Of a stretch of 64,000 nt of DNA, positions 11,465 through 62,274 are shown in pieces. A program made the translations under genes and the position numbers. Below the pieces are notes generated by a model. It was not told the DNA's origin. It ran no database searches and worked only from the letters and a program-made list of their open reading frames with translations. The stretch lies in sequence record NC_019929.1, one strand, 5' to 3'. Every line of letters begins with the position of its first letter. Position 1 is the stretch's first letter.

Positions 11465-11478
11465 AGATAGATATTATC
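11465..11478 (+). promoter_or_regulatory. Phage promoter motif AGATAGATATTATC
   Basis: Exact copy of the repeated intergenic motif, about 35 nt upstream of the ATG at 11514. Confidence 0.65.
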
Positions 11479-11513
11479 TTGGTGCAATCGACTATTCGCG
11501 GAGCTTTACCATA

Positions 11514-43397: not shown

Positions 43398-44651
43398 ATG
43401 GCAAATTTTGCGCAAAAACAAGCTGCCCGTGAATCGATCGAAGGTGCAGGCACCATCGTTCCGGACGGTATCGAACTGCCAGCGGAGTCCGTAGAAGGTA
43501 CTCTGGCTGACATCGAGCACGACACCAAACCTATCGACCAGATGGATGCGGAAGCAGACGTCCTGTCCGAAGATGGTGACGAAACTGATGCACAGCTGGA
43601 TGCAGTTGATTCTGCCCAGGCTGCTGCTGATGGCGAAGGTGACGACGCTGACATGGAAGCGGAAGAAGATATGCCTGACGATGCAGCCGATGCGCTGGAT
43701 GTTGCTCAGGAATCTATCCGTAAGCGTTGGGGCTTCGAACACCGCACCAGCGTTGCTCGCGAAAGCTACGGTTCTCGTAACCGCCGTAAGGTCGCTCGTG
43801 AATCCCTGTGGGATGACATCAAAGCGTTCCTGAAGCGTATCTGGGAATGGCTGAAAGAGCAGGGTCGTAAAGTGAAAGACCGCTGGCTGAAATTCAGCAA
43901 CCAGGGTAAATCTATCCAGGCGCGCGCGAAAAAGTACGACGGTGCGATCCGTAACCTCGGCAAGCAGAAGAAAGACACCATTTCTGGTGGCTTCATCAAG
44001 CAGCTGACCAAAGGCGGCAAGTTCGTTGGTAACGACGTACCTGCGCTGAAAGCGGTATCCGATGAAATCGGTGCTATCTACGCTGCGCAGGAAACCACCG
44101 TGTCTAAACTGACCGGTCTGGTGGCTGGCGTTGAAGGTGGCAAACTGAAGGCTGGCTTCGCAGAAGCGGTCAACGGTAGCGTACTGAAGAAAAATGGCAA
44201 CGTTGACCTGCTGGGCAACCAGGTAGGTAAAGCAGAAATCACTGGCGAAGGCGACGAAGTCAATGCGTCCTTCACCGTGGTCGAAGCTGAAGGCAGCGTG
44301 GAAAGCTCGGTTTCTACTCCGAACGCATCTACCCTGTCCTCTCTGGTAGCCTTCTTCAACCAGCTCGGTAAGAAAGTGGAAGAAAACGTGAAAGCGTACC
44401 ACAAGAACAACCAGGCTGTTGATAAGTACGAACGTGCTATCGAAGGGCTGCTCAAGCGTATTGACAACGTGAAAATCGATGACAATCCTGAGCTGACCAG
44501 CAATGTCCGTGTTGCCCGCCGTGCTATCACTGTCGGTAACCAGATCATCTCCTACACTGAGCGCTGCATCGCGACTGGTCAGAAAAACCTGATCAGCGGC
44601 GTAAACGGCTACATCAGTGCTGGTATTGCTGCGCACGAAAAGTCTAAGTAA
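43398..44651 (+). CDS. Abundant inner-head protein, paralog 2 (SPN3US gp54-like)
   Basis: Same MANFAQ..ARES start, ISGGFI core and NGYIxAGIxA.EKSK end as paralog 1; ATG at 43398. Confidence 0.75.
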   Translation: MANFAQKQAARESIEGAGTIVPDGIELPAESVEGTLADIEHDTKPIDQMDAEADVLSEDGDETDAQLDAVDSAQAAADGEGDDADMEAEEDMPDDAADALDVAQESIRKRWGFEHRTSVARESYGSRNRRKVARESLWDDIKAFLKRIWEWLKEQGRKVKDRWLKFSNQGKSIQARAKKYDGAIRNLGKQKKDTISGGFIKQLTKGGKFVGNDVPALKAVSDEIGAIYAAQETTVSKLTGLVAGVEGGKLKAGFAEAVNGSVLKKNGNVDLLGNQVGKAEITGEGDEVNASFTVVEAEGSVESSVSTPNASTLSSLVAFFNQLGKKVEENVKAYHKNNQAVDKYERAIEGLLKRIDNVKIDDNPELTSNVRVARRAITVGNQIISYTERCIATGQKNLISGVNGYISAGIAAHEKSK

Positions 44652-44664
44652 TTAGGCTGGCGAC

Positions 44665-44702
44665 ATCCCCCACTTCGGTGGGGGATTTCCCTTTCTTTTT
44701 TT
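44665..44702 (+). terminator. Intrinsic terminator
   Basis: ATCCCCCAC-TTCG-GTGGGGGAT followed by a pyrimidine run. Confidence 0.8.
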
Positions 44703-44724
44703 GTCCCGGATTATAAATTGTTTC

Positions 44725-44737
44725 AGATATATATTAC
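44725..44737 (+). promoter_or_regulatory. Early (vRNAP-type) promoter AGATATATATTAC
   Basis: Contains TATATTAC, the early promoter consensus reported for phiKZ; heads an accessory cassette. Confidence 0.7.
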
Positions 44738-44793
44738 CTAAGTGAGATTCTATATTGAATCTTTTCCCCCAACCCATTTAAGGAATATTTATC

Positions 44794-45450
44794 ATGAACA
44801 ATATCTTAACTTTTGCTGGCGTTACCCCAACTGTTGTTGAGAACGGTCGTCTGTCATTCGCGAAAGGCGAAGACCGTATGTCTATTACTAAACTCGAACT
44901 CCACGCGATTAACCTGTGGCTGGCGAGCATGGATGCCCATAACCTACCAACCCTGTTGAAGGTCGGTAGTAGCATCTTCACTGTGGCGAATACCACCACC
45001 ATTCCGAGCCAGGAATACGTTGCCCTGCTGAAAGCAACAAAGGCTGGTCAGTTCGGTACCGATACTTTACTGCAATGCGGTGCACGCTTTATCCACGACG
45101 AAGTGGAGATGATTGGTAATGCCGACAACCCACTGTATCTGCGCCAGGTTGAAGGGGCATGTGAAGCGGTGTTCGGTTATTCGGTTACCGTACCGAACGG
45201 GACTGAGAAAGACCTCGTGGAAAGCGTCGTGAAAGATGCCATCAAATCCACAGCCACGAAACTCGGCAGCGGGTCTATCCCAACCATCACCCGTCAGCTG
45301 AGCACCCTGGCCGAAGAAGTGCACCTGCAAACCCTGCTGCAAAGCTACGAACGTATGACCGTTACCGTCCACGCGTCTTCCCTGCTCGATGACCTGTTGG
45401 ACGTTGTCGACAGTTTGATGCTGCCGGTCACCCTGAAAGAAGCCGCATAA
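44794..45450 (+). CDS. Early hypothetical protein (218 aa)
   Basis: TAAGGA RBS downstream of the early promoter. Confidence 0.75.
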   Translation: MNNILTFAGVTPTVVENGRLSFAKGEDRMSITKLELHAINLWLASMDAHNLPTLLKVGSSIFTVANTTTIPSQEYVALLKATKAGQFGTDTLLQCGARFIHDEVEMIGNADNPLYLRQVEGACEAVFGYSVTVPNGTEKDLVESVVKDAIKSTATKLGSGSIPTITRQLSTLAEEVHLQTLLQSYERMTVTVHASSLLDDLLDVVDSLMLPVTLKEAA

Positions 45451-45461
45451 GCGGCTTTTTT
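45440..45461 (+). terminator. Short terminator-like hairpin
   Basis: AAGCCGC-ATAA-GCGGCTT plus TTTT, overlapping the stop codon. Confidence 0.55.
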
Positions 45462-45513
45462 ACACTTCAACGTAACATTATGTTTTCGACCATTACCAGT
45501 AAGGAGTATTAAC

Positions 45514-46074
45514 ATGCGTACCATTAACCTGCAAGACGTAAAAGACATCGACGCTACTTCAACCCCACTGATGAACGAGCTGTCCATTCTCACGATGTCC
45601 AACGGCGAAGAAATTGTTATTCCTCGCCCGGTGATGCTTGGCCTGGCATTGTTTGTACATGCCGCCTACGGGGCCGCATCCAAGAAATCTATTCTGAATT
45701 ACGACGGCTACCAGTTCGTGATTCCTGACCGTCTGGATTACCAGCCGTTTATCGACCTCCAGATGTTCTACAAATACCTGATCTCCGCAGGTCTGTCACA
45801 CATGTCGAAAGTGTACATCCGCGACTATTCCCGTATTGAGCACTTCTACCGCCGCAAACAAGAGCGTGTACCGGTTGAAGTTGACGGCTATCAGACACGC
45901 CTTATCATGAAGCCACACTCCTTCGAGTTACTGGAGTGTGAGCTGGACATCGAACAGCATCAGTTACGCAATGACTTGATGCGTGGTTATAACCTGCCCA
46001 TGGGCGAAGTCAAAGGGTTGCGTGAACGATCTGGCGATGCAAACTGGTGGGCGAATTCCCGTGCTGCGAAATAA
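45514..46074 (+). CDS. Hypothetical protein (186 aa)
   Basis: TAAGGAG RBS preceded by TTCGACCATTA. Confidence 0.75.
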   Translation: MRTINLQDVKDIDATSTPLMNELSILTMSNGEEIVIPRPVMLGLALFVHAAYGAASKKSILNYDGYQFVIPDRLDYQPFIDLQMFYKYLISAGLSHMSKVYIRDYSRIEHFYRRKQERVPVEVDGYQTRLIMKPHSFELLECELDIEQHQLRNDLMRGYNLPMGEVKGLRERSGDANWWANSRAAK

Positions 46075-46083
46075 GGAGGTCGA

Positions 46084-46434
46084 ATGGAATTCCAATATAC
46101 AGCAAAAACCACACCATCGGCTGTTACCTTTCGTTTCGAAGAACGCGGGGTAAAGCATGAGTACGCTGTGTTAGCAGAGGATGTGCAGGACGCACTCCTC
46201 AAGATGACTGACCCGAATTGGCTAGGTGAGCTAACCCTGCGTTTAAAGACCCCTGTGGCCTGCACAGGGACGTTCTCAGGTGCAACCATGCAGCACATCG
46301 TTTTAGAGGTACAGGGCCGCTCAGCGCGTTTCACGTACTTTACAGACAGCATGGTCACCCGAACGTTTTCCCGTAATCAATTGGTACGCTGTATGCGTGG
46401 ACTGATTAAAGAACTGAATAAGGAAGCGAGATGA
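46084..46434 (+). CDS. Hypothetical protein (116 aa)
   Basis: AGGAGG RBS. Confidence 0.7.
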   Translation: MEFQYTAKTTPSAVTFRFEERGVKHEYAVLAEDVQDALLKMTDPNWLGELTLRLKTPVACTGTFSGATMQHIVLEVQGRSARFTYFTDSMVTRTFSRNQLVRCMRGLIKELNKEAR

Positions 46435-47033
46435 AAATCTCTTTGATTGCAGCAGTAGACCGTAACAACGTGATTGGGCGTTCAGCTTCTTTTGCTTTGC
46501 CCTGGCGTCTACCGGCGGATTTGAAGAACTTCAAAGAAGTGACGATGGGGAAGACGTGTATCGTGGGGCGCAAGACCTGGGAGTCGTTTGACTCCACGCC
46601 ACTGCCGGGGCGTAAGTTCATCATCATTACCCGTCACCCGGATGACCTACAGGTCAAACTGCGTCGTCCGGAACAACCGCTGGATTCAGCAATAGGGGCG
46701 ACCAGTATCGGTGCTGCCCTGGCGTTGTGTGAAGAAGAGGGGTTGAATGAGGTGTTCATTATCGGAGGTGCTGAGATTTATCATCAGTGCTTGCCGATGG
46801 CGCACGCAGTTTACCTTTCACGGATTGATCTCGTGGTAGAAGACGGGGACGTGTTCTTCCCGGATATCAACCGCGACGATTTCCGTTTGGATGTCAGTCT
46901 CACGCATCTGCCGGACGGTGAATCCCACACCCACCGCTGGACGTATCAAATCTGGAACCGTATTGAAAAACCTAAGCCGGTTCGTCGTTACCCTGGTCAC
47001 GTTGTCAAAAATCTTTCTCTGGAATTACGCTAA
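46431..47033 (+). CDS. folA: Dihydrofolate reductase
   Basis: LIAAVDRNNVIG, LPWRLPADLKNFK, IVGRKTWES, FIIGGAEIY and GDVFFP. Confidence 0.95.
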   Translation: MKISLIAAVDRNNVIGRSASFALPWRLPADLKNFKEVTMGKTCIVGRKTWESFDSTPLPGRKFIIITRHPDDLQVKLRRPEQPLDSAIGATSIGAALALCEEEGLNEVFIIGGAEIYHQCLPMAHAVYLSRIDLVVEDGDVFFPDINRDDFRLDVSLTHLPDGESHTHRWTYQIWNRIEKPKPVRRYPGHVVKNLSLELR

Positions 47034-47371
47034 TGAACCCGAACAACTCCTATCCCGTTAAACGTATCACCCTGACTGAAGAAGGCGCAGTAACTGCTCG
47101 TGCGTTGACCAGCTGCCCCATGAAACTGACAGACGTGCTTATCGGCCAGGACGGTATCTTCCTGATTTTCGGTGAGCGTGACCGTGTCTTCCACCGCGTC
47201 GACCAGCCCGAAGAGTTTCTGCAACTCGCCGCGACGTTGGGCGACCAGGAACAGACCTCTGATGTGGCTATCAACGTAACCCCGAGTGATTTGTTCATTG
47301 TACGTGACAAACACAGCGCTTGTGGTTTACGTGCAGTGCGCTGGAAACGCGAGTGGTTAGCTCGCGCCTAA
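47033..47371 (+). CDS. Hypothetical protein (112 aa)
   Basis: TAATG coupling to the DHFR gene. Confidence 0.7.
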   Translation: MNPNNSYPVKRITLTEEGAVTARALTSCPMKLTDVLIGQDGIFLIFGERDRVFHRVDQPEEFLQLAATLGDQEQTSDVAINVTPSDLFIVRDKHSACGLRAVRWKREWLARA

Positions 47372-47408
47372 TTAACCAATTCGACCATTACCCTTAAGGA
47401 ATACCACA

Positions 47409-48473
47409 ATGAGAGCACCGCAAGCAGACGCAACCTGGATGAAGTTTGGCGACGATATTGAGCAAGCTATCGGCGCAATGCCAAAACCTAAGACCCCGGA
47501 AGAATTAAGAATTGAGCAGTTTGCTGAATTCAAAATCGAAACCCATCGTAAACAGTTAGGCGCGTACGGTCTGGTTAATTCGTTTAACCGCCTCCTTCGC
47601 CTGACCGTTTCAGTTGAAGCCCGCCGCAAGATGACGATGCCTGATCTTGACGAAGTGCTCCGTAAACACCCGCGTCTTTTTAAAGAGACAACGACGGTAA
47701 CGGAGTTCTTTGAAATGGGCTTACCTAAGTTAAGACTTAAACCGGAAGAGGTTATGATATTCAACCAGGCGTCGGGTTGTTGGATATCTTACCTTGACGT
47801 TATCGAGCGTACAGATGTCTCTCAGTTAACGCTGGGTGAGCTGAAAGTAATGAAGCGCGATGTTGGCTATACGGTTGATCTCAAAGCAATCATCGCTGCG
47901 CTCGAGAATGAAATCTTTGAAGTTGAAAAGCTACGGGTTAAGATTACGGTGAAGGGTAACTTCGGCAAACGTTCCTACAAAGCCATGTGGCCAACGCCGG
48001 TGTCGGCCACTACGCTGGCGGTGAACTGGATACAGAAGCGACTGGCATCTATGCAGGTGTATCCGGAGGAGGTGCAGTTTACACTTCCGGATGGACGCAA
48101 AGCTGACGGTATCCATTTGGTGTCAACCAAATCTAAACTACGCATCACTGACCTCCGTTTCAAAGACGAGGACTTATTACCCGTGGGTACCCGACCAACA
48201 ACAGTCGGCGCACTGGAGAACAAAATTCTCCAGCAAGAAGGGGTGATGGTTGTTCTGCGTCTTCCTGCAAACAACACACTACCTTACTTCTTCATCAAAC
48301 GGTCTGCTGACAATCTTCCCGTTCAGGAATACGTCCGTAGAGTGTTGAGTCGATATGAACTCAACCCGGAAGATGTGGTGTTCATTCACGGTGATACAAT
48401 GCGTCCGTTTAATCCGGATGAGTTTTACACCATGGGACAGTTACGCGAAACCTATAAGGGTAAAGCGAAATAA
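47409..48473 (+). CDS. Hypothetical protein with three internal repeats (354 aa)
   Basis: TAAGGA RBS preceded by AATTCGACCATTA; three PE(E/D)V motifs. Confidence 0.7.
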   Translation: MRAPQADATWMKFGDDIEQAIGAMPKPKTPEELRIEQFAEFKIETHRKQLGAYGLVNSFNRLLRLTVSVEARRKMTMPDLDEVLRKHPRLFKETTTVTEFFEMGLPKLRLKPEEVMIFNQASGCWISYLDVIERTDVSQLTLGELKVMKRDVGYTVDLKAIIAALENEIFEVEKLRVKITVKGNFGKRSYKAMWPTPVSATTLAVNWIQKRLASMQVYPEEVQFTLPDGRKADGIHLVSTKSKLRITDLRFKDEDLLPVGTRPTTVGALENKILQQEGVMVVLRLPANNTLPYFFIKRSADNLPVQEYVRRVLSRYELNPEDVVFIHGDTMRPFNPDEFYTMGQLRETYKGKAK

Positions 48474-48476
48474 CAT

Positions 48477-48507
48477 CAGGGGGCTTCGGCTCCCTGTTTT
48501 TTTTTTT
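48477..48507 (+). terminator. Intrinsic terminator
   Basis: CAGGGGGC-TTCG-GCTCCCTG followed by T11. Confidence 0.8.
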
Positions 48508-48548
48508 GCATTTTCAGCCAGTGATATGACTACAACGAGGGAAAGCCC

Positions 48549-50060
48549 ATGCAACAGTATTTTGAACTCCCATCGTTGGACGCAACTATTCGCAAACCGA
48601 TTGTTGACGGTGTCGTGCAACGTGTCCTGAACGAATCCGGTATTGAACAAGCCTCCGTCATCTTTGAAGACGAGATTAACAATACTGCGTACCAGCCTGG
48701 CTCAACCCTTGGGGATGAAGTTCCGGTTGATTACGCTTCGCCTGAACGCGTGTACGTAGAAGTCGAAGAAGAACGTGATGAGTACGCTCGCATTAACCGT
48801 CAAGTCGGAATGCAAGCTGAACCGTACTTCTTTGAGAACGCCAAAGACCAGGTACGCGCATGGCCCGTCCGCACGATGTACAACATTACGATTACGCTAC
48901 GCCGCACCAGCGCGTCGCGTGATGAATTGCTGCGCTGGACAAACCGTCTGGACTCTTTAATCGATATGGGACGCTTCTCGGTGATGACCGAGGCCGAAGC
49001 ATTCTATTATATTCCGCGCCCTGCCCTGCATCTGCTGAACGCGTGTTATGTGGCTGCCGGTACCCGTGTGCCCGAGTTTGATGATTTCAAAGCGTACCTG
49101 AAAGCCCACTTTACCCCCGATGTCTTTGTGGCCGGGAACGTGGCCGGTGGCCAGGAAGCGTTATCGGTACGGTATTCGCCGACCCGTCTGGAAACCGTGT
49201 ACGATGTGCAGGTGCCCGCCTGGGACAAAGACGAGAACCGCTGGGAAGCGACATTCGTTGTACGCTTCTCGTACCAGCGCCCGGAAGAGATTGTGGTGTC
49301 GTATCCATACATCATCAATCAAACCCCGTTACCAGAAGAATACTGGCCAGAGATTGACCCGCCGTGGGTGTCGAACGAGGAAGAGGTGCAGCGCCATGCG
49401 CAGCAAAAGAACCTCGACGGTACCTGGTGGATTAATGAATCCCGCCAGTTGATTCGTCTGCCGTATCTGCTCTCACCGACCGAGCAGTTTGAACGTACGC
49501 ACTCCCCGCTAAAGAACAAGCTGCTGCACATCTTTGGCACTGACGTGGTGTTCGATGAGGACAACATGACCAGCCCGAAAGTGCTAAGCGTCGATGACTT
49601 GCCGTACGTCTGGAACAAAGACCTGCTGCCGTACATCGAACATTGCCGGGCGATTGACCCGACCGGACAACGGGGGGTATTCCGTACCGAGTTGTTTGAG
49701 GAGGGACAGATCATTGAACCGCGTTTCTATAACTGGGACAACGGTACCTTTGCCCTGAAAGGTCGTGATGTGTTGGTCAACAAAGGCTACTACTTGACCG
49801 AGTCGGTGATTTACGACTGGCGGAACCTTGACCTTTGGCCACTCCAGTTATACCCGAAAGCCGCGAAGGTGTTAATTGAATGGTTATTCCCCGAGTGGGA
49901 CGTACCAGCCTGGTGGTGGGATTTGCCGAAGTTCCCACCGAGTGTGGAGGACGACATCAAGAACCTCACCAAAACGCCAGACAAACGGATTCTGTTAACC
50001 ATCTTTAACACCACCATCTTTACCATGCGAGGTACTGAGAATGTTGAAAGCGTCGCGTGA
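48549..50060 (+). CDS. Virion structural protein, possible neck/tail terminator (T4 gp15-like)
   Basis: 503 aa; PVRTMYNITITLRRT.SRDELLRW resembles the gp15 pattern; TATG at 48525. Confidence 0.45.
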   Translation: MQQYFELPSLDATIRKPIVDGVVQRVLNESGIEQASVIFEDEINNTAYQPGSTLGDEVPVDYASPERVYVEVEEERDEYARINRQVGMQAEPYFFENAKDQVRAWPVRTMYNITITLRRTSASRDELLRWTNRLDSLIDMGRFSVMTEAEAFYYIPRPALHLLNACYVAAGTRVPEFDDFKAYLKAHFTPDVFVAGNVAGGQEALSVRYSPTRLETVYDVQVPAWDKDENRWEATFVVRFSYQRPEEIVVSYPYIINQTPLPEEYWPEIDPPWVSNEEEVQRHAQQKNLDGTWWINESRQLIRLPYLLSPTEQFERTHSPLKNKLLHIFGTDVVFDEDNMTSPKVLSVDDLPYVWNKDLLPYIEHCRAIDPTGQRGVFRTELFEEGQIIEPRFYNWDNGTFALKGRDVLVNKGYYLTESVIYDWRNLDLWPLQLYPKAAKVLIEWLFPEWDVPAWWWDLPKFPPSVEDDIKNLTKTPDKRILLTIFNTTIFTMRGTENVESVA

Positions 50061-51393
50061 CCAAACCACGTTCGTTCCCGTGGAACCGGAAACCCCTATC
50101 CTGAATAAACCACAGGACGGGGTAAAGGAAACCACGAACATCGTGACCCAGCCACTGCGCACTACGGTGACGGACTTTGACCGTATCCCGAAACAGTACC
50201 TGATGAAGTACGTGGAAGGGTCAGCCTGGCCAGTGGACTTCTTCAACTTCCTGAAAGGGAAGAACGATGCGAAGAAGTTCTTTGACACGCAGGTCATTAC
50301 GCCTGACCAGCAGTTAGAGAAAATCATCGGGATGGAACTGCGGGTAACGTCTGCCCTCGACCGTTCGCAAGACGGGCAGAACAAAACCTTCTCCCTGACG
50401 GGTTCTGCTACGGTGGCCAATACCATTGCGCCGAACGAAGGTTGCTTCTTCGTGGCCCCGATTGGCGACGACCGCTATGCGTTGTTTAACATCACCTCGG
50501 TTACCCGGATGTCGAACAACAAAGTGGCGACGTACAATATCGAGTACGGGATGCTGTTCGAAGTGTCCCCGGCGATTGCGGAAACCCTGCGTCAGTGTAC
50601 CGTGCGGGAATGGTACTACGTAGCGGAACGAGCGTGGACGGGGGGTGATACGTTACTGTCCCCGAACGAGTACCGCAGCTTCCTGAAACTGGGCGATGCT
50701 GTACTCGACATTGAAACCACGTACGTGAAGCGTTTCTGGAATTCGGAAACACAGACACTGTTGTTCCCCCGCGACTGGCGTGTGTACGGGTTGAAGGGGG
50801 CGTCGTACTACGACGTGTTCCTGTGCTTGTTTGTGCGCACCATCGGTCTACGGGCTGTGGGTAAGGATATTCAGATTTATCCGCATCCGCCAAAGAACGT
50901 GGAAGATGTTGAGTGTCTGTTCACGGCGATTGCCAAACAACAACCGACGTTCCTCAAGTCGTACAACAAACCGAACGGGGCGTATCTGGTTAATACCTTC
51001 CGGACGATGCAAACCCGTAACTCGGTTGCCTGGTCGCGTATCACCAATACCCGTTACTTTAGTGATGACCTGCGCTCACCGAAACAGTTTCCGGCCGAGT
51101 GGGTGAAGTTCACGCCGTTTGACCCGACCATCGTCGACAAATACCGCGGGAACGAAGGGGAATCGCTTCCGGCGTTCTTGCCGTTAACGTATAACCCGTA
51201 TCTGTTGTCGGAAACGTTCTACAACGGCTCGTACAGTTCGTTGCTGGAATACGGTTTGAATCTCTACCTCAATAAGCGTGCAGTCTCCTCCGAGATTGCG
51301 TTGAAGCTGGCTGAGGTGTGCAACACGTTACCAGTGGATGCCCAGTTCTATTACATCCCCCTGGTGTACGTGCTGTTGAAATACGCGAGGTAG
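50041..51393 (+). CDS. Virion structural protein, possible neck/head-closure (T4 gp14-like)
   Basis: 450 aa; APNEGCFFVAPIGD..YALFNITSV resembles the gp14 PxEGDLIY..LFEI pattern. Confidence 0.5.
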   Translation: MLKASRDQTTFVPVEPETPILNKPQDGVKETTNIVTQPLRTTVTDFDRIPKQYLMKYVEGSAWPVDFFNFLKGKNDAKKFFDTQVITPDQQLEKIIGMELRVTSALDRSQDGQNKTFSLTGSATVANTIAPNEGCFFVAPIGDDRYALFNITSVTRMSNNKVATYNIEYGMLFEVSPAIAETLRQCTVREWYYVAERAWTGGDTLLSPNEYRSFLKLGDAVLDIETTYVKRFWNSETQTLLFPRDWRVYGLKGASYYDVFLCLFVRTIGLRAVGKDIQIYPHPPKNVEDVECLFTAIAKQQPTFLKSYNKPNGAYLVNTFRTMQTRNSVAWSRITNTRYFSDDLRSPKQFPAEWVKFTPFDPTIVDKYRGNEGESLPAFLPLTYNPYLLSETFYNGSYSSLLEYGLNLYLNKRAVSSEIALKLAEVCNTLPVDAQFYYIPLVYVLLKYAR

Positions 51394-51397
51394 TAGC

Positions 51398-51946
51398 GTG
51401 CAACAACGTGACCCAAAGTTTACCGCAGCCTTTATGCTGTTTCACAAGTGGGTGTTCTGGCGCGTACCGGAGTACGCGACCATTACCAAGTACGCCAGTC
51501 AGGAACACGGGTTGTTCTTACCGGAAGACCCGAAGAAAGCCCGTGCGATTCTGCTCAACAAAAAGAGCATCTATTTGCATCCCTCGGAAGCGGCGGTGTA
51601 CGCGGCAACCGGTGGGGCATTAGACATCACCGACCCGAATGACGCGATCATGGTCTACGGGTGGATTATGGAACATCTGGCAGACTGGTTACGGTATATG
51701 GAACAACCGCACTTGATGGTACGTCCTGTGCCAATGGAAGGGTTGCGGCAGTTCAATGCCCTGGCAGGAAAACTGTTCCCGGTCGCCAACCGCTATGGCT
51801 ACTTTAAGAAGCCAGAACGGACAATGGTGTCCGCAGTACAGGCCCTGTTCGGGGAAGTCCGGGAAGAAGTTCAGCAGCACCGGTTTAACGATACGATTAT
51901 GCGGCGTATCGAGAAGGTGTATCGTCAACGTGGAGGAATGCTCTAA
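51398..51946 (+). CDS. Conserved hypothetical protein (182 aa)
   Basis: GTG start with GAGG RBS; TAATG coupling to the next gene. Confidence 0.65.
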   Translation: MQQRDPKFTAAFMLFHKWVFWRVPEYATITKYASQEHGLFLPEDPKKARAILLNKKSIYLHPSEAAVYAATGGALDITDPNDAIMVYGWIMEHLADWLRYMEQPHLMVRPVPMEGLRQFNALAGKLFPVANRYGYFKKPERTMVSAVQALFGEVREEVQQHRFNDTIMRRIEKVYRQRGGML

Positions 51947-53256
51947 TGTCGTTTGGTCGGTTACAGAAAATTGCGAATACGCACATTTCACAAGCGGCAG
52001 GATTACCGGCCATCGATTACGGGGCATTTATCACTGTACGCGGTGCGCCGTTAACGGTGCTGAAAATCGTCTCGCTGATTCATGCCAGCAACTTCGTTAA
52101 CGACATGGCGACGCTCACTCACTTGACGGTGGCGGTGCCGTTTAGCCAGATGCGATTAACGACGTCTGCGGCAGAAGGTGATATCAAAATCAAACTTATC
52201 CTGCGTAACGGGAACAAGATTGCCGGACGGTTCAGTTACCGGGGCATCGCGATTAATAACCGCGACCACGATATGGAATCCCCGACCATGTTCCTGGGGG
52301 AGTCGAACGACAAATCCCTGGCGTTGGTAACGTTTGAGTTGATGGATGAGGCGATGTGGTTCTTGCGGGTACGGCAAGTGGGGGGTATTTATCACGATAC
52401 GAACCCGCTGACCGTGGCCCGATCGATTCTGGCGGATACTCTGCCCACTGGAGCGGCATCCGAAGGGCAGTTGCTGAGCCTGTCTTACGACGAGGAAGAA
52501 CAGCAGGGGTATCGGGATATACTGATACCGGACTCGCAGGATTTCTTGTCGGTGTTCGATTACCTGCAAAAGCATTACGGCATTTACAGCAAAGGGCTGG
52601 GTGTCTTTTTGTATATGCAGCGCTGGCATCTGTTCCAGCCGTGGGACTCGAAGAAGTTTACCGGGGCGAAGAAGAAACTCGTTATCATCAACCTGCCGCG
52701 TGAGATGGCCTCACAACTTGACCGGACGTGTCAGGTGTCAGGTGATACCGTGTACTTGATTTGTGGTGGGGATGTCGTGGCGATGGAGTCGAAAGACGAA
52801 GACGCGATGAACAAAGGGACGGGGTATCGGGTAGGTTCACTGCGCGTGTTAGATGGGCGTGCAACGTCGTTCTCCCCAGGGGAGATTTCAACCACGACGT
52901 CCGCGGACTTTGTTTCTCAGGCTGACCCGAATGCGTATCCGGGGGGTGTGGTAAACGCACCGATTGATCCAAAGCAGCATTTCTCTGACACGGATAAACC
53001 GCAACGCTCGAGCCTGGCCGCCCGTAACGGGACGATTACCAAGACCACTTGGAACCGTTCCACTCACGGGGTGCTGACGCCGGGGATGGCGGTGAAGTAT
53101 ATGTATGCGAACGACTATGGCGTCTATTCCCGCTACGGTACCTTGGCCGCTGAGGTCTTCCAGTCAGCCCAAGACGGCCAGACGATGGCCTCGGGTCGAT
53201 ACAATACGCAGTCCCAGTTAACCCTGTGGCTCACCGAAGAAAAATTTACAGACTAA
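51946..53256 (+). CDS. Baseplate hub protein (phiKZ gp101-like; T4 gp27-like)
   Basis: 436 aa; GGIYHDTNPLTVARSIL, FDYLQKHYGIYSKG and LTPGMAVKY; synteny. Confidence 0.6.
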   Translation: MSFGRLQKIANTHISQAAGLPAIDYGAFITVRGAPLTVLKIVSLIHASNFVNDMATLTHLTVAVPFSQMRLTTSAAEGDIKIKLILRNGNKIAGRFSYRGIAINNRDHDMESPTMFLGESNDKSLALVTFELMDEAMWFLRVRQVGGIYHDTNPLTVARSILADTLPTGAASEGQLLSLSYDEEEQQGYRDILIPDSQDFLSVFDYLQKHYGIYSKGLGVFLYMQRWHLFQPWDSKKFTGAKKKLVIINLPREMASQLDRTCQVSGDTVYLICGGDVVAMESKDEDAMNKGTGYRVGSLRVLDGRATSFSPGEISTTTSADFVSQADPNAYPGGVVNAPIDPKQHFSDTDKPQRSSLAARNGTITKTTWNRSTHGVLTPGMAVKYMYANDYGVYSRYGTLAAEVFQSAQDGQTMASGRYNTQSQLTLWLTEEKFTD

Positions 53257-53300
53257 CGTAGTGTTATGTCGAAACACACCAAAACCTTAAGGACTTTTCA

Positions 53301-54101
53301 ATGAAAGCGATCCACACGTTTCGCATGTCAGGACAAACGCTTCTGAGCATCGACGAATACGAGAAAAAGAACTTCTCTAAACCGGCGAAGTTATTTGAAC
53401 GTTGTGTGCAGCTGATGCCGCATGGGCAGCAACAGCAGCTGGATTTTATCATGGCCTCGTCCATGGATAAGACCGTTGCCGTCATCTTTACTGTTGACGG
53501 TGTTCAAAGCAAACGTGACCTCGCGATCACTGATGAGGGTAGTCTCGGTGACCTGCTGTTCCGTCACGCCCTGACTACTGCGGTTATCAGTGGGGCGCTG
53601 GAAGCGCAGTACGGGTTTGCCTACTGCTACTTCTACGCCCAGAAAATCTCCAACACCATCGTCCCTGGTGACCCGGATACGTACCCGCAATACATTGAAC
53701 AGCTGACTCCGGCTGAGTTCAACGAAAGTGCGGACTACGAGTTCAACGTCTTCCGCTTTACCATGGTCGGCGAATCGCGTGTGAAAGAATACACCACGGC
53801 TTTCCGTGCGGTGGTACGTTACGCGGTGCTGTCGTCTGACGAAGGGCTGTCCAGTAACTTCAATGAGGTGTTCCCGGTCTTGCAGTTGGGGCCATACATC
53901 ACCTTCAACGGTTACGTACCATTCCCAGCCCAAATCATCGGGCCGTTGAACGACAATTCGATTCTGCCGATTGCCGAAGATCGCGACCTGTTCGCGTCCA
54001 ACGCGGTACTGCTGGTGAACGATACGCGTTTCAACATCTCCATCCAGGCGGGTATCAATGACCACGCAATCGCGGTCACGGATAAGATGGCGCTGCGTTA
54101 A
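53301..54101 (+). CDS. Hypothetical protein (266 aa)
   Basis: TAAGGA RBS; AAAATTTAC (phiKZ middle-promoter-like) at 53241-53249. Confidence 0.7.
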   Translation: MKAIHTFRMSGQTLLSIDEYEKKNFSKPAKLFERCVQLMPHGQQQQLDFIMASSMDKTVAVIFTVDGVQSKRDLAITDEGSLGDLLFRHALTTAVISGALEAQYGFAYCYFYAQKISNTIVPGDPDTYPQYIEQLTPAEFNESADYEFNVFRFTMVGESRVKEYTTAFRAVVRYAVLSSDEGLSSNFNEVFPVLQLGPYITFNGYVPFPAQIIGPLNDNSILPIAEDRDLFASNAVLLVNDTRFNISIQAGINDHAIAVTDKMALR

Positions 54102-54105
54102 GACC

Positions 54106-54142
54106 TACCCGACCTCCTTGTGGGGTCGGGTATCCTTTATTT
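54106..54142 (+). terminator. Terminator hairpin
   Basis: TACCCGACC...GGTCGGGTA followed by T-rich sequence. Confidence 0.6.
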
Positions 54143-54276
54143 GTTTGCTAAACGCCACACAGCGAAGATAACGTGTGCTAAGGCAACGTATGTACCGCAA
54201 TCGCTTAAAACTCGTTACAGTGCGTTTGAGAGCGTTTTTAAGGCATTGAAAAGAAAGTTTGACTCCAATGTTTTTC

Positions 54277-54289
54277 AGATATATATTAC
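54277..54289 (+). promoter_or_regulatory. Early (vRNAP-type) promoter AGATATATATTAC
   Basis: Shares TTTCAGATATATATTACCTA with the copy at 44721; heads the second accessory cassette. Confidence 0.7.
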
Positions 54290-54347
54290 CTACATGAGAG
54301 AAAACAATTATCTCTCTAATCCGACCATTTCCTAAAGGAGTTTTACC

Positions 54348-54593
54348 ATGACTAAAATCGCATTCATCAAAGACATGACCAAATGCTTCGGTATCGCAGT
54401 GATGATTCTCGCATCTGCCATCATTGGCTTCCTGTCTCCGTTCGCCGTAATTGACGGTGTAACCTATCTGACCGGTAACATGGTTATCGGTGCGCTTACC
54501 GGTGGTGCATGGGGTGCAACCTTGCTTGTCGGCTGCTTCATGGGTTGGGACAAAGCACTGGTTAACTACCTGAAAGCCAAATTCAAAAAGTAA
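54348..54593 (+). CDS. Small membrane protein, paralog A (81 aa)
   Basis: Two hydrophobic helices; AAGGAG RBS; paralog at 55320. Confidence 0.75.
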   Translation: MTKIAFIKDMTKCFGIAVMILASAIIGFLSPFAVIDGVTYLTGNMVIGALTGGAWGATLLVGCFMGWDKALVNYLKAKFKK

Positions 54594-54602
54594 TACCCCT
54601 CT

Positions 54603-54639
54603 AGGCCACCACATGGTGGCCTTTTTAATTCGACCATTA
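54603..54639 (+). promoter_or_regulatory. Hairpin plus AATTCGACCATTA element
   Basis: AGGCCACC-ACAT-GGTGGCCT-TTTT immediately followed by the repeated 13-mer. Confidence 0.6.
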
Positions 54640-54657
54640 TCCCATTAGGAGCAGTAA

Positions 54658-55257
54658 ATGAACACAATTGAAATGGCAGTAAAAGCGAAAAACGAAGACC
54701 AGCTGGTGAATGCCGTTCTTTATAAACTGTCCCAAAAGTTCGGACACCAATACGTTTCCAGCGGCTTCCAGAATTTGACCACGCGGCCAAGCGGGGAGTA
54801 CGTGTTGCCGGAGAAACTCCAGGCAGCAAAAACCGATAACTATTACGGAGTCCTGGTACACCACATCCAAGCCGCATTGGCTGCGCAGTATGTGGGCTGT
54901 ACTGTCCGTGTGAGCCTGGCGCAATATTACCGCGATGGCGATATTGACCCGATCGGTTTCTTTTGCGTTCATGTTGAACATCCTGACGATGGACAGGTCA
55001 TCAATTTCGTGGTTTATCTTCACCCGCTGGAAGCAGCATTCCACGCGGTGGATTTGAACCGGCTTGTTGAGATGAAGACGCTCGCAACACGCGAAACTCC
55101 AATCGTGGTACTTACCCACGATATGATTTTAGAAGTAACCGGAATGGACTACGTAGATGGATACGTGATTGATTCCGTCAGCATTGCCGCACATGCCGCA
55201 GGCTGGTCAGATACCGAGCAATATGGACTGTCGTTGTTACTGTCCGCGATTAACTAA
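54658..55257 (+). CDS. Hypothetical protein (199 aa)
   Basis: TAGGAG RBS. Confidence 0.7.
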   Translation: MNTIEMAVKAKNEDQLVNAVLYKLSQKFGHQYVSSGFQNLTTRPSGEYVLPEKLQAAKTDNYYGVLVHHIQAALAAQYVGCTVRVSLAQYYRDGDIDPIGFFCVHVEHPDDGQVINFVVYLHPLEAAFHAVDLNRLVEMKTLATRETPIVVLTHDMILEVTGMDYVDGYVIDSVSIAAHAAGWSDTEQYGLSLLLSAIN

Positions 55258-55264
55258 ACACAAC

Positions 55265-55298
55265 CGGGAGAGGAAGCTCTCCCGTAATTCGACCATTA
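55265..55298 (+). promoter_or_regulatory. Hairpin plus AATTCGACCATTA element
   Basis: CGGGAGAG-GAAG-CTCTCCCG followed by the 13-mer. Confidence 0.6.
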
Positions 55299-55319
55299 AG
55301 CATAACAGGACACCTTAAG

Positions 55320-55565
55320 ATGACCGACGCTGAAATCAACTTCACAACACCACTCACGTTCAAACGCATTACCCTGGCCATCATTGCAGTCGTTGTTGTA
55401 CTGCTGTCGCCTTTCGTTGTAACCGATGTAACCACGTATTTAACCGGCAGTGAATCCCTCGGGGAACTCATTGGCGGGCTTTGGGGTGTGCTGCTGGTAG
55501 CAACCTTTTACTTTGGTTGGGATACCCTGCTGCTGAACCACCTGCGCACCAAGTTCACGAAATAA
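55320..55565 (+). CDS. Small membrane protein, paralog B (81 aa)
   Basis: 27/53 ungapped identities with paralog A over the C-terminal part. Confidence 0.75.
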   Translation: MTDAEINFTTPLTFKRITLAIIAVVVVLLSPFVVTDVTTYLTGSESLGELIGGLWGVLLVATFYFGWDTLLLNHLRTKFTK

Positions 55566-55615
55566 GCTTTACCCTTAACACAATTCGACTATTAACTATC
55601 TCAAGGAATACGACC

Positions 55616-55759
55616 ATGATCTCTCGCAAACACAAACTCGCTATCTATTCTATCGCTGTTGCTGTACTGGTAACCGTTGGCATGATGACCATCAACAATG
55701 ACTACAACACTTGCCGCGCTAACGGTAACTCAGTAGCACTGTGCACAGGACGCGGCTAA
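55616..55759 (+). CDS. Small membrane-anchored peptide with two Cys (47 aa)
   Basis: AAGGA RBS; basic N-terminus, hydrophobic helix, then CRANGNSVALC. Confidence 0.6.
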   Translation: MISRKHKLAIYSIAVAVLVTVGMMTINNDYNTCRANGNSVALCTGRG

Positions 55760-55760
55760 G

Positions 55761-55946
55761 ATGACTTTCTCTGATAACGCGTTCGCTGAATTCCTGTCCA
55801 ACCCACGTATCAAACGCGAGTGGGACAATCTGTCTAATGGCTCCCGTCATCGCCAACACGATGATGAGGTGACGCACGTCACTGCCCAAGTGTTACTGGT
55901 GGATTCCACCGGTATCGCCTATCCCCAATTCGAAGAGAGTTACTAA
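55761..55946 (+). CDS. Small hypothetical protein (61 aa)
   Basis: Starts 1 nt after the upstream stop. Confidence 0.6.
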   Translation: MTFSDNAFAEFLSNPRIKREWDNLSNGSRHRQHDDEVTHVTAQVLLVDSTGIAYPQFEESY

Positions 55947-55947
55947 C

Positions 55948-56118
55948 ATGGCTGTAATGCAAAACGCTGACGGTAGTATTCGTGTGCTGGAAGACAATGA
56001 AACGGTTGTCCGCGGCGAAGAAAAGGAAAAGGTGTTCATCGCCGCCCCGAAGAACGTCGTGAAGCCAGATTGGAAAAACGACCTGGCCGAATTCCGCAAA
56101 CAGCTGGAGAAGAAATAA
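55948..56118 (+). CDS. Small hypothetical protein (56 aa), absent from the ORF track
   Basis: MAVMQNADGS...FRKQLEKK fills the gap exactly and is TAATG-coupled to the next gene. Confidence 0.6.
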   Translation: MAVMQNADGSIRVLEDNETVVRGEEKEKVFIAAPKNVVKPDWKNDLAEFRKQLEKK

Positions 56119-56681
56119 TGGACATGAAGAAAGAGTTCGACTTCAAGAATCACAAACCGGATACCACAACCAAGCATTACTTTGGAAAAGAAGAACTGGA
56201 CGGTGTTGTTATTCACGACAAACTGGACGATTCGAAAGTGCCAGAAAGTGACTACGCTACCCGTAAGCAACAACTGGCACAAACTGAGCTGGACAAGTTT
56301 GACGTCTCTCGTGGCTTACCGGAAAGTCTTAAACCATGGAACCTCCCACCGGAGAACGTGGGTAAGGGTGTGGTATTGAAGCACATCTTGCATGAAGACC
56401 TTCCTGTTGACGCCAACGGTAAGGTTGCTGACCTTGCCCCGCCACGCGGGATGTATCGTGACGAAGACGGTAACTTTCGTGACCTGAAGGAGCTCCGTAA
56501 ACGTGACCTACTGTTAGGCGGTGATTTCGAAGACGGTGAAGTAGTTAAAATCATCAAAGGGTTAGGTGCAGACTACGACGGTATCTCTTTACCGCTGCAT
56601 AAACCCTCCCGCGCAGAGAAGTCCGTCAGTAAATACCGCAATGTGATGAATGGGCTTATCGCTCGCGCATCCAAGAAGTAA
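56118..56681 (+). CDS. Hypothetical protein (187 aa)
   Basis: ATG at 56118 with GGAG RBS. Confidence 0.7.
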   Translation: MDMKKEFDFKNHKPDTTTKHYFGKEELDGVVIHDKLDDSKVPESDYATRKQQLAQTELDKFDVSRGLPESLKPWNLPPENVGKGVVLKHILHEDLPVDANGKVADLAPPRGMYRDEDGNFRDLKELRKRDLLLGGDFEDGEVVKIIKGLGADYDGISLPLHKPSRAEKSVSKYRNVMNGLIARASKK

Positions 56682-56688
56682 ATCCAAC

Positions 56689-56714
56689 GCCACCTTCGGG
56701 TGGCTTTATTTTTT
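56689..56714 (+). terminator. Intrinsic terminator
   Basis: GCCACC-TTCG-GGTGGC followed by a T-rich tract. Confidence 0.7.
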
Positions 56715-56732
56715 CCCTTAAGGAATATTGTA

Positions 56733-62222: not shown

Positions 62223-62235
62223 GATAGATATTATC
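62223..62235 (+). promoter_or_regulatory. Phage promoter motif GATAGATATTATC
   Basis: Motif copy about 40 nt upstream of the ATG at 62275. Confidence 0.65.
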
Positions 62236-62274
62236 TACATGACAACCGACTGTTCTATCTAAAGGAGAATATAA

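Follow-up and report, generated by a model that had tools for sequence, protein, structure and literature searches.

In T4, RegA acts at AU-rich, poorly conserved sites that overlap the AUG, and RegB cuts within GGAG. The epsilon sequence of T7 gene 10 is a translational enhancer that lies 5′ of the SD sequence and pairs with 16S rRNA. T4-type phages also carry promoter-early stem-loops (PeSLs), described by Arbiol et al. in 2010 (PMC2839356) and Comeau et al. in 2014 (PMC4122927). In the jumbo phages phiKZ and 201phi2-1, promoters show an AT-rich early motif, an AT-rich middle motif at -24 and a late T(-3)ATG(+1) motif, and the late motif of AR9 is AACA-N6-TA (PMC7598289; PMC11512511). ChmC is a nucleus-associated RNA-binding protein of chimalliviruses, for which no sequence motif and little specificity among phage mRNAs were found (Enustun et al. 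2024, PMC11077065).

Here, we analysed a window of 64,000 nt (record NC_019929.1, positions 179051-243050) of Erwinia phage phiEaH2, an SPN3US-like jumbo phage. A 13-letter motif lies just 5′ of the ribosome-binding site of about 16 phiEaH2 early genes. Its consensus is AATTCGACYATTA and its core is TCGACYAT. No earlier description of it was found; early mRNAs probably carry it as a so far undescribed control signal. The features of the window are given below.

11469-11478, + strand: class-B early promoter core (virion RNAP type) AGATATTATC, 5′ of the nvRNAP gp68-like gene
11485-11497, + strand: motif variant CAATCGACTATTC, 14.9 bits, 8 nt past the class-B core and 16 nt before the ATG at 11514
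44726-44747, + strand: class-A early promoter GATATATATTACCTAAGTGAGA, head of the gp239-gp244 unit
45440-45461, + strand: terminator-like hairpin AAGCCGC-ATAA-GCGGCTT with T-run, 3′ of gp239, ending about 21 nt before the motif at 45483
45483-45495, + strand: motif TTTTCGACCATTA after a conserved TATG, 18.8 bits; gp240 ATG at 45514
47378-47390, + strand: motif AATTCGACCATTA, 22.0 bits, 6 nt past the gp243 stop codon with no terminator; gp244 ATG at 47409
54278-54299, + strand: class-A early promoter GATATATATTACCTACATGAGA, head of the gp250-gp256 unit
54296-54316, + strand: leader stem-loop GAGAGA-N9-TCTCTC, in the promoter-motif interval of gp250
54318-54330, + strand: motif variant AATCCGACCATTT, 17.2 bits; gp250 ATG at 54348
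54603-54627, + strand: terminator hairpin AGGCCACCACATGGTGGCCT with T-run
54627-54639, + strand: motif AATTCGACCATTA; gp251 ATG at 54658; left breakpoint, in the comparison with Asesino, of the gp251-gp252 indel
55265-55284, + strand: GC hairpin CGGGAGAGGAAGCTCTCCCG with no T-run, abutting the motif
55286-55298, + strand: motif AATTCGACCATTA; gp252 ATG at 55320
55582-55594, + strand: motif AATTCGACTATTA; gp253 ATG at 55616; right breakpoint of the gp251-gp252 indel
62226-62255, + strand: class-B core (62226-62235), then a weak motif variant CAACCGACTGTTC (62243-62255); gp262 ATG at 62275

Distribution of the motif

The sequence TTCGACYATTA occurs five times in the window, always on the + strand, against 0.03 expected (100 shuffles), and the whole phiEaH2 genome holds eight exact copies of this 11-mer. 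The five copies are at 45485, 47380, 54629, 55288 and 55584. The sequence-only reading had located them correctly, with 13-mer starts at 47378, 54627, 55286 and 55582; the variants that it had listed at 54318 and 11485-11497 are real and have the same placement relative to the start codon, and two copies do directly follow GC hairpins (54603-54622 and 55265-55284). It had proposed a genome-wide search and an analysis of position bias. A weight matrix gave 17 matches of at least 14 bits in the phiEaH2 genome, compared with 2.9 in Markov controls, and 15 of the 17 were on the coding strand with an SD between motif and ATG. The coding strand holds all 15-16 plausible sites, and leave-one-out matrix scores of the motif sites range from 10.3 to 21.7 bits. 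At 14 of the 15 sites, an SD and an ATG were found 27-34 nt from the motif start, for which the background rate is 0.55% (binomial p ~3e-31). The motif thus lies upstream of start codons as first described, but the distance given then (about 18-30 nt) has to be corrected: the motif ends 16-21 nt from the ATG in these 15 sites, with one exception of 8 nt, and starts 29-34 nt from it. Nor is the motif confined to the two early cassettes in which it had seemed concentrated: the approximately 16 copies are spread over the genome, in every class-A early unit, and the motif is present in three other genera too.

Relation to early promoters

The motif sites all fall within early transcription units, those of the virion RNA polymerase, and at least one is present in every one of the seven class-A units, which are headed by the seven strongest early promoters. 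Among the motif-bearing genes is that of the nvRNAP gp68-like subunit (ATG 11514), whose 548-aa product is homologous to PHIKZ068, the fifth non-virion RNAP subunit. Others encode small accessory proteins, a protein with an HD domain and an HTH protein. Downstream of class-A promoters, the motif follows after about 35-48 nt with a stem-loop between, as in gp250; analogous stem-loops are found downstream of the other class-A promoters. In the gp68-like gene, it follows 8 nt after the class-B promoter, the AGATATTATC core of which is kept upstream of the orthologue in Asesino, SEGD1, Machina and Kwan, and in the gp240 family it follows a conserved TATG by 3-4 nt. Inside operons, the motif occurs after a terminator, after a hairpin without T-run, or right after a stop codon. 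It precedes four consecutive genes of one operon (gp250-gp253), and the first gene of the gp239-gp244 unit is without it. Because promoter spacing varies while the ATG distance is fixed, the motif tracks the start codon and not the transcription start. The three promoter types at differing distances, the operon-internal sites and the fixed ATG distance therefore point to an mRNA leader element, and our tentative reading, to which we give a probability of roughly 0.45, is that this element controls translation of the early regulon. Of the functions suggested earlier, the anatomy (fixed SD/ATG distance, variable promoter distance, strand and orthologous leaders) favours an RNA-level element at the translation initiation region.

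Some observations sit uneasily with a leader element. Two copies start exactly at the end of a terminator T-run, a classical place for a promoter. Machina and two of the phiEaH2 sites have a motif-SD gap of 1-4 nt, the other sites one of 8-12 nt, and such lineage-variable spacing is awkward for one rigid protein footprint over both; the whole range of 1-12 nt also fits a promoter starting at the motif end. The motif may accordingly be a third phage promoter class, compact (roughly -12 to +1) and read either by an altered virion RNAP or by the non-virion RNAP together with a specificity factor particular to the lineage. Such promoters would give short leaders and sustain early genes once read-through from the early promoters stops. 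The motif is indeed orientation-specific and always 5′ of genes, and its size is close to that of the AR9 late promoter, -11 to +1 (PMC7598289; PMC11512511). Moreover, jumbo-phage middle/late promoters are poorly defined, with no motif assigned to 24 of the 67 known in 201phi2-1 (PMC7598289; PMC11512511), and some AR9 genes have tandem early and late promoters (PMC7598289). However, the ATG distance is tighter than for recognisable promoters (class-B leaders are 29-67 nt), in the gp68-like and gp240 families the motif follows another promoter-like element by only 3-8 nt, so that the promoters would have to overlap, and in Machina a start after the motif would put the SD at the extreme 5′ end. 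Two RNAP promoter classes can be recognised without the motif, namely the AGATATTATC type and TTTACG-N13-(G/A)TATGAC, the latter resembling the phiKZ middle/late class (PMC7598289). Both are kept in all six genomes (6/6), Derbicus included, whereas the motif varies by genus and is absent from the Derbicus genome. It has no TATG and is not AT-rich, and although it is similar to the T7 promoter from -17 to -8, there is no single-subunit RNAP. A third promoter class thus appears rather unlikely to us.

The position of motif sites downstream of early promoters would also suit a DNA operator, at which a phage transcription factor would block or pause early transcription. A candidate is the Cro/C1-type HTH protein gp026 (HTH_3, E 1.4e-9), which is encoded by the first gene of a class-A unit and whose leader carries the motif in three genera. 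But the motif is not palindromic, its orientation to the gene is identical in every copy, and copies deep in operons, one per cistron at a fixed ATG distance, would be unneeded by a roadblock operator. We regard this as the least probable of the explanations considered.

Structure and pairing of the leader

In predicted folds, the motif was mostly unpaired, with a mean of 0.64 compared with about 0.55 over whole segments, and the 35 nt upstream of it folded more stably than those of other genes (-8.5 against -5.7 kcal/mol, p=0.039). Approximately half of the copies lie 0-10 nt past a stable hairpin, one of them a non-terminator without T-run. The hairpins, the predicted single-stranded state and the location between cistrons of one operon (gp250-gp253) would be in line with an endoribonuclease site, cut by a phage enzyme or by one of the host that works with a specificity factor from the phage. 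Cleavage would split polycistronic early transcripts, with the hairpin protecting the upstream 3′ end and a short leader left downstream, or it would inactivate early mRNAs, as T4 RegB does. The consensus of RNase E is RAUUW / RN-WUU, and the motif has two AUU triplets that are weakly RNase E-like. However, the best-conserved part, UCGAC, is not RNase E-like, and in Machina and Kwan conservation does not extend to the AUU parts. A processing site requires no fixed ATG distance, and the gp68-like and gp240 copies are at the presumed transcript 5′ end, where there is nothing to remove. No homologue of RegB (PF10715), nor of RegA (PF01818), was found in phiEaH2. A cleavage site is therefore a quite unlikely explanation.

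No complementarity of the motif to E. coli 16S, 23S or 5S rRNA was found beyond that of shuffled controls (motif/16S pairing, -9.7 kcal/mol; shuffle mean, -9.8). Since most phiEaH2 copies already come with a strong SD, an enhancer is not obviously needed.

Conservation across genera

The core TCGACYAT was found 5′ of orthologous genes in Erskinevirus, Seoulvirus, Machinavirus and Wellingtonvirus, and in the leaders of seven orthologous gene families of these four genera the motif is conserved while the flanks have diverged. With three of the 12 motif positions fixed by anchoring, identities of motif and flanks were 0.81 vs 0.46/0.62 in SEGD1, 0.67 vs 0.22/0.12 in Machina and 0.58 vs 0.40/0.17 in Kwan. 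Because the core is kept in orthologous leaders whose flanks are unalignable, selection acts on the motif sequence itself. The gene of gp253 (47 aa) has the motif upstream in all five genomes that possess it, and the gp250 orthologue of Asesino carries the full consensus AATTCGACCATTA. The spacing to SD and ATG is strict in Machina, where eight of nine sites have 21 nt. Machina and Kwan both have the motif fused to an unusual SD (GACTATCGAGGA and TCGACTRATCAYAGAGGCC, respectively) in place of their customary TAAGGAG, suggesting that motif and SD may be read as a single unit.

Gene gain and loss at the motif

Gene cassettes are swapped at the motif, and several gains or replacements between phiEaH2 and Asesino break there. 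Breakpoints at the motif or leader are at record positions 38359, 148095/148495, 233676/234632 and 241327. The ends of the gp251-gp252 indel (233676 and 234632) are the starts of two motif copies; gp252 is an 81-aa paralogue of gp250. Where phiEaH2 has a 131-aa gene, flanked by the copies at 148074 and 148505, Asesino has an unrelated one. An extra gene, gp055, stands between a promoter-motif and a terminator-motif, and gp262 gives way to another gene in Asesino, the break falling at its ATG. A hairpin-motif-SD module of about 58 nt, containing the AGGCCACCACATGGTGGCCT hairpin, recurs at record 38720 and is thus common to two junctions of unrelated genes. The locus 5′ of the 47-aa gene has 0, 1 or 3 extra genes depending on the genus, each with its own motif copy. 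These loci, and synteny with SEGD1 that is broken at 5 of 7 motif junctions but at 51 of 181 others (p=0.026), are what would be seen if the motif were primarily a DNA-level recombination handle (a PeSL-like linker) or a functionless leader copy spread by recombination. Against Asesino, however, enrichment was not significant (2/8 vs 30/222), and most other phiEaH2/Asesino indels are without the motif. Whole-gene indels necessarily break in intergenic regions, early accessory genes are the most plastic anyway, 13 nt is short for homologous exchange, and across four genera the core persists in orthologous leaders whose flanks cannot be aligned. The expected coincidence of breakpoints with the motif is thus seen at several loci, but its enrichment is modest and confounded with the plasticity of early accessory genes, and a primary role in recombination, or a mere spread of functionless copies, is very improbable.

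Proposed mode of action

Under the leader-element reading, early mRNAs would arise at promoters of the AGATAT(AT)ATTAYC type, transcribed by the virion RNA polymerase that the phage injects. Directly 5′ of the SD, roughly between -31 and -18 relative to the AUG, the element would be exposed as single-stranded RNA, in many cases straight after a 5′ or inter-cistronic hairpin. We infer that it acts as RNA and is bound by a trans-acting factor that recognises its sequence, most probably a phage protein particular to this lineage, which would set translation of early mRNAs, either shutting it off (as T4 RegA) or boosting it. No motif-binding protein was identified, and phylogenetic profiling leaves 42 candidates. 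As a by-product, the repeats may act as short homologies for insertion, loss and replacement of cassettes, because the same 13-60 nt are repeated before many small genes.

Comparison with known systems

Like T7 gene 10 epsilon, the motif is immediately 5′ of the SD, but its rRNA complementarity is no better than that of shuffles. Like jumbo-phage RNAP promoters, which serve two multisubunit RNAPs, it is a short orientation-specific word 5′ of genes; unlike them, it is neither AT-rich nor TATG, and sites of the AGATATTATC and TATG types precede it within the same leaders. T4 RegA and RegB sites are likewise cis signals in the initiation region of a subset of early mRNAs, where one phage protein acts on many messages, whereas the phiEaH2 motif is 5′ of the SD and has a GC-containing core. 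ChmC crosslinks phage mRNAs in peaks near start codons, those of operon-internal genes too, which is where the motif lies; these data come from PhiPA3 and not from an SPN3US-like phage (PMC11077065), and the peaks are cited here as a precedent for the leader element. Like the motif, the PeSLs of T4-type phages are repeated composite intergenic modules (promoter and/or stem-loop, SD, ATG) placed before small early genes of unknown function in plastic regions (PMC2839356; PMC4122927). In both, indels and replacements between relatives break in the module, and the downstream gene carries its own expression signals. However, a PeSL is defined by a sigma-70-like promoter for the host RNAP, whereas most phiEaH2 copies have no promoter and those present are of the virion-RNAP type. 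PeSLs also lack the 13-nt word that phiEaH2 has between hairpin and SD and that different genera share in the leaders of orthologues.

Occurrence and conservation of the motif

The window matches Erwinia phage phiEaH2 (NC_019929.1, 243,050 bp; genus Erskinevirus), an SPN3US-like jumbo phage, with 100% identity at record positions 179051-243050 on the + strand; subtracting 179050 from a record position gives the window coordinate. The repeat that a sequence-only reading had noticed ahead of ribosome-binding sites was confirmed: the window contains five copies of the 11-mer TTCGACYATTA, each on the + strand, against 0.03 expected, and a 13-mer search of the window allowing up to two mismatches added a site at 54318. 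Across the whole phiEaH2 genome there are eight exact 11-mers, all on the + strand and each followed by a Shine-Dalgarno sequence (SD) and then an ATG. A weight matrix was built from 15 sites (leave-one-out scores of 10.3-21.7 bits) and applied at a cut-off of at least 14 bits with Markov controls. It gave 17 matches in the genome against 2.9 in the controls. At 15 of them the motif ends 16-21 nt (8 nt at one) before an ORF-opening ATG; the other two, at record positions 241975 and 217079, lie within genes and resemble chance matches. The proposed placement at a short distance from start codons was borne out as well, SD and ATG lying 27-34 nt from the motif start at 14 of 15 sites versus 0.55% of random positions (p ~3e-31).

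About 13 positions are informative (A-A/T-T-[T/C]-C-G-A-C-Y-A-T-T-A), four or five of the 13 letters being G or C, and the aligned sites have no conserved letters 5′ of these positions. The motif is a real, conserved cis element. It is apparently undescribed so far; a literature search with the motif string returned only unrelated primer coincidences. Scanning IMG/VR for the motif with an SD yielded 47 contigs, nearly all with a single chance match. An uncultivated viral contig of 246,337 bp (IMGVR_UViG_3300031418_000005) has two exact matches to motif and SD and is probably a further relative.

Versions of the motif in related phages were determined from whole genomes. The 9-mer TCGACYATT occurs nine times forward versus twice reverse in Asesino (Erskinevirus) and ten times versus once in SEGD1 (Seoulvirus SPN3US); forward counts are zero in Machina (Machinavirus), three in Kwan (Wellingtonvirus) and two in Derbicus. 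Machina uses (T/A)(C/T/A)GACT(A/T)TCGAGGA, with the SD fused on and 21 nt to the ATG in eight of nine cases, and the Kwan version is AATCGACTRATCAYAGAGGCC. No version of the motif was found in the whole Derbicus genome. Seven gene families have the motif in between two and five genomes each. The 47-aa gp253 family has it in all five; the others are a 142-aa family, a 223-aa HD protein, a 325-aa family, an HTH protein, the gp68-like protein (a homologue of a non-virion RNA polymerase subunit) and a 186-aa family. Orthologous leaders keep the core and differ in upstream context, which may be a promoter with stem-loop or the end of another gene. With phiEaH2 as the reference, and with 3 of 12 motif positions fixed by anchoring, identity in the motif exceeds that in the two flanks in SEGD1 (0.81 vs 0.46/0.62), Machina (0.67 vs 0.22/0.12) and Kwan (0.58 vs 0.40/0.17). 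The word is thus under selection and is more than a recent copy.

According to PHROGs and Pfam, almost all motif-bearing genes are of unknown function; the exceptions are gp026, a Cro/C1-type HTH protein, gp170, an HD-domain protein, and the gp68-like protein, the 548-aa product of window 11514-13160.

Early promoters and the motif-bearing regulon

AT-rich promoters of one strongly conserved family, AGATAT(AT)ATTA(C/T)C-T-nn-GTGA, are found in phiEaH2; in phiKZ-like phages such promoters are attributed to the virion RNA polymerase (PMC7598289). The family has two forms. Class A (seven copies) reads cAGATATAT(A/TT)TTACYTAGGTGAGA, with a short 5′ stem-loop after each copy, and class B (about 17 copies) contains AGATATTATC, whose core scores on both strands because it is nearly palindromic. 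The family is near letter-for-letter identical across Erskinevirus, Seoulvirus, Machinavirus and Wellingtonvirus; Derbicus has the variant ATATATGTTATC.

Early promoters, motif contexts and selected genes in the window
11469, 44726, 54278, 62226, 63178 and others: sites of the AT-rich early promoter family
11514-13160 (+): 548-aa "hypothetical protein", PHIKZ068 homologue
47378 and 55582: internal-cistron motif copies directly after a stop codon
54348-54593 (+): gp250
54603-54622: terminator hairpin with T-run, followed by an internal-cistron motif copy
55265-55284: hairpin without T-run, followed by an internal-cistron motif copy
55320-55565 (+): gp252

All motif sites fall in units headed by a class-A or class-B promoter, and all seven class-A units include at least one motif-bearing gene. 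The order promoter, stem-loop, motif, SD, ATG is found in five class-A units, and copies also precede second, third and fourth cistrons (gp056, gp170, gp240, gp244, gp251, gp252 and gp253). At the class-A promoters at record 87451, outside the window, and at window 44726, the stem-loop is present, the motif is missing before the first gene, and it stands only on later cistrons. These first genes are gp239 at window 44726 and, behind a long leader, gp102 at record 87451.

Some further features of these regions were observed. The gene of the 548-aa protein is driven by a class-B early promoter, and the protein matches PHIKZ068 (PDB 7ogp_B, E 1e-9), which in the non-virion RNA polymerase of phiKZ is the fifth subunit, the one for promoter specificity. 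The genes gp250 and gp252 encode paralogous 81-aa hydrophobic proteins (phrog_16811), a pair that is a single copy in Asesino. Outside the window, record 165160-165230 contains AT-rich repeated promoter-like words, AGATATTATTAAATATATTAAAATATATTAATATCTTTAGATATA; this stretch adjoins the Asesino genome ends (Asesino 245289) and may be a region related to replication or packaging.

Leader element or promoter

All six genomes show enrichment, upstream of genes, for a second promoter-like class composed of TTTACG and, after about 13 nt, (G/A)TATGAC; it is a candidate promoter class of the non-virion RNA polymerase. It corresponds to the phiKZ middle motif, AT-rich near -24, and late motif, TATG at the start (PMC7598289). 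With the AT-rich and TATGAC classes, each polymerase thus has a recognisable kind of promoter, stable across genera.

Examples of the TATGAC class
Window 48524: ATATGAC before gp245
Window 53270-53290: GTGTTATGTCG before gp249
Record 25797
Record 83847 (-)
Record 153381 (-)

The motif resembles neither class. Where jumbo-phage late promoters have T(-3)A(-2)T(-1)G(+1), it has (C/T)ATT, or TATC in Machina, and it is not the AT-rich word of about 10 nt near -10 that marks early promoters, lying instead downstream of AGATAT(AT)ATTAYC words. It could nevertheless be a third, compact promoter class with transcription starting at its end. The spacing from motif to SD, which spans 1-12 nt, the two copies that start at the end of a terminator T-run and the 24 of 67 mapped 201phi2-1 promoters without an assigned motif (PMC11512511) are consistent with this, but both polymerases already have their cross-genus-stable classes and the motif, unlike these, alters between genera and is missing from Derbicus. 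We regard a third promoter class as somewhat unlikely.

Other promoter types were considered. A T7-type promoter was rejected, despite a likeness to TAATACGACT, because a single-subunit RNA polymerase (PF00940) was unmatched in the phage genome, a search in which control genomes were silent too. Sigma-70-like promoters were also rejected: 44000-57000 holds seven matches, below the shuffle expectation of 10.6, and most motif copies are without a promoter-like site. Only one class-A site overlaps such a match, at 54259-54287 (+), where TTGACT, 17 nt and TATATT (10 of 12 matches) coincide with the early promoter of gp250; host RNA polymerase might therefore also fire there.

The motif keeps a constant distance to SD and ATG, whereas its distance to promoters varies: class-A cores precede it by about 35-48 nt, the class-B core of the gp68-like gene by 8 nt and, in the gp240 family, a conserved TATG by 3-4 nt. 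Further copies lie inside operons. The SDs of motif-bearing genes are CGAGGA in Machina and AGAGGCC in Kwan, versus the usual TAAGGAG of those phages, as if motif and SD formed one unit. In predicted folds of the 15 leaders the motif is mostly unpaired (mean 0.64 vs about 0.55 for whole segments), and its 35 upstream nucleotides fold more strongly than those at other genes (-8.5 vs -5.7 kcal/mol, p = 0.039). The fixed SD and ATG distance, the varying promoter distance, the atypical SDs and the folds therefore favour a leader element acting on translation initiation. We give a probability of about 45% to the reading that a lineage-specific factor controls translation of the early regulon through this mRNA element. 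Of the remaining readings, an RNA processing site seems unlikely and a DNA operator highly improbable.

Partners of the motif were sought among RNAs and proteins. Duplexes with E. coli 16S, 23S and 5S rRNA were no better than for shuffled motifs, which rejects an rRNA-pairing enhancer. No complement was found in the non-coding RNA/tRNA cluster at 167-171 kb, the only good complements in the phage being the motif's own opposite strand, and the folds of the 15 leaders have no intramolecular pairing partner in common. A six-frame genome search gave no match to RegA (PF01818) or RegB (PF10715), with control genomes equally silent and the sensitivity thus unproven. Phylogenetic profiling (presence in the four motif-bearing relatives, absence from Derbicus) left 42 ORFs, a number too large for a candidate factor to be singled out.

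A possible address tag on early messages

The PhiPA3 protein ChmC binds close to start codons, with no sequence motif found for it (PMC11077065), which makes a reading by an RNA-binding protein plausible, as a lead only. In one form of this reading, which we consider quite unlikely, the motif would be an address tag on the immediate-early mRNAs of these nucleus-forming, SPN3US-like phages. The reader would be a phage RNA-binding protein, ChmC-like or new, injected with the DNA or made first. This protein would either deliver tagged messages, made in the early infection vesicle or in the phage nucleus, to host ribosomes with priority over host mRNAs, or gate the export of these messages. If true, a bacterial virus would sort mRNAs by a signal coded in their sequence.

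To our knowledge, what is known of how nucleus-forming jumbo phages control their genes concerns almost entirely the two RNA polymerases and their promoters. A well-defined 13-nt word marking a regulon of about 16 early messages, and conserved across four genera infecting Erwinia and Salmonella, offers a concrete experimental handle, and SPN3US is an established genetic model.

Cassette exchange at the motif and comparison with T4

The suggestion that breakpoints of gene gain and loss coincide with the motif was examined by blastn of phiEaH2 against Asesino. It held for four phiEaH2/Asesino events, which break at the motif or its leader, and for junctions compared with SEGD1; enrichment at Asesino junctions was not significant. 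Asesino lacks a 956-bp segment with gp251 and gp252: the alignment breaks off at record 233676 and picks up again at 234632, in each case on the first base of a motif copy. The gp250 terminator hairpin is retained in Asesino, and a single copy precedes the gp253 orthologue. The 131-aa gene flanked by the copies at 148074 and 148505 is replaced by an unrelated gene of 132-134 aa in Asesino and SEGD1. In phiEaH2, gp055 with a terminator-motif-SD module stands between the class-A leader and gp056, whose orthologue directly follows the promoter in Asesino, SEGD1 and Machina. gp262 is replaced in Asesino from the ATG onward.

Record 38720 and 233654, both between unrelated genes, share a 58-nt module made up of hairpin GGCCACCACAYGGTGGCC, T-run, motif and CCATTAGGAGCA. 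The number of extra genes upstream of the conserved 47-aa gene is zero in SEGD1, one each in Asesino, Machina and Kwan, and three in phiEaH2; every extra gene has a motif copy of its own. Synteny is broken at 2 of 8 motif junctions vs 30 of 222 others relative to Asesino, and at 5 of 7 vs 51 of 181 relative to SEGD1 (p = 0.026). The link is statistically modest, and early accessory genes are plastic anyway. We take exchange at the motif repeats to be real but secondary, as argued likewise for the promoter-early stem-loop cassettes (PeSLs) of T4 (PMC2839356, PMC4122927); that the motif is a recombination handle and nothing else appears very unlikely. PeSL-like exchange is thereby documented outside T4 relatives and helps to explain the turnover of small early accessory genes in jumbo phages.

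A mark of T4 PeSLs is the formation of minicircles, circular excision products between neighbouring elements. Each PeSL has a strong sigma-70-like promoter (-35/-10 with an AT-rich upstream region), which most motif copies of phiEaH2 lack. The PeSL stem-loop is a terminator or attenuator; about half of the motif copies follow a stable hairpin, which may act likewise, and others have none. Both kinds of element have an SD and start codon at the 3′ end (14 of 15 motif sites), and the indel and replacement breakpoints seen at PeSLs between close relatives are likewise found at the four phiEaH2/Asesino loci.
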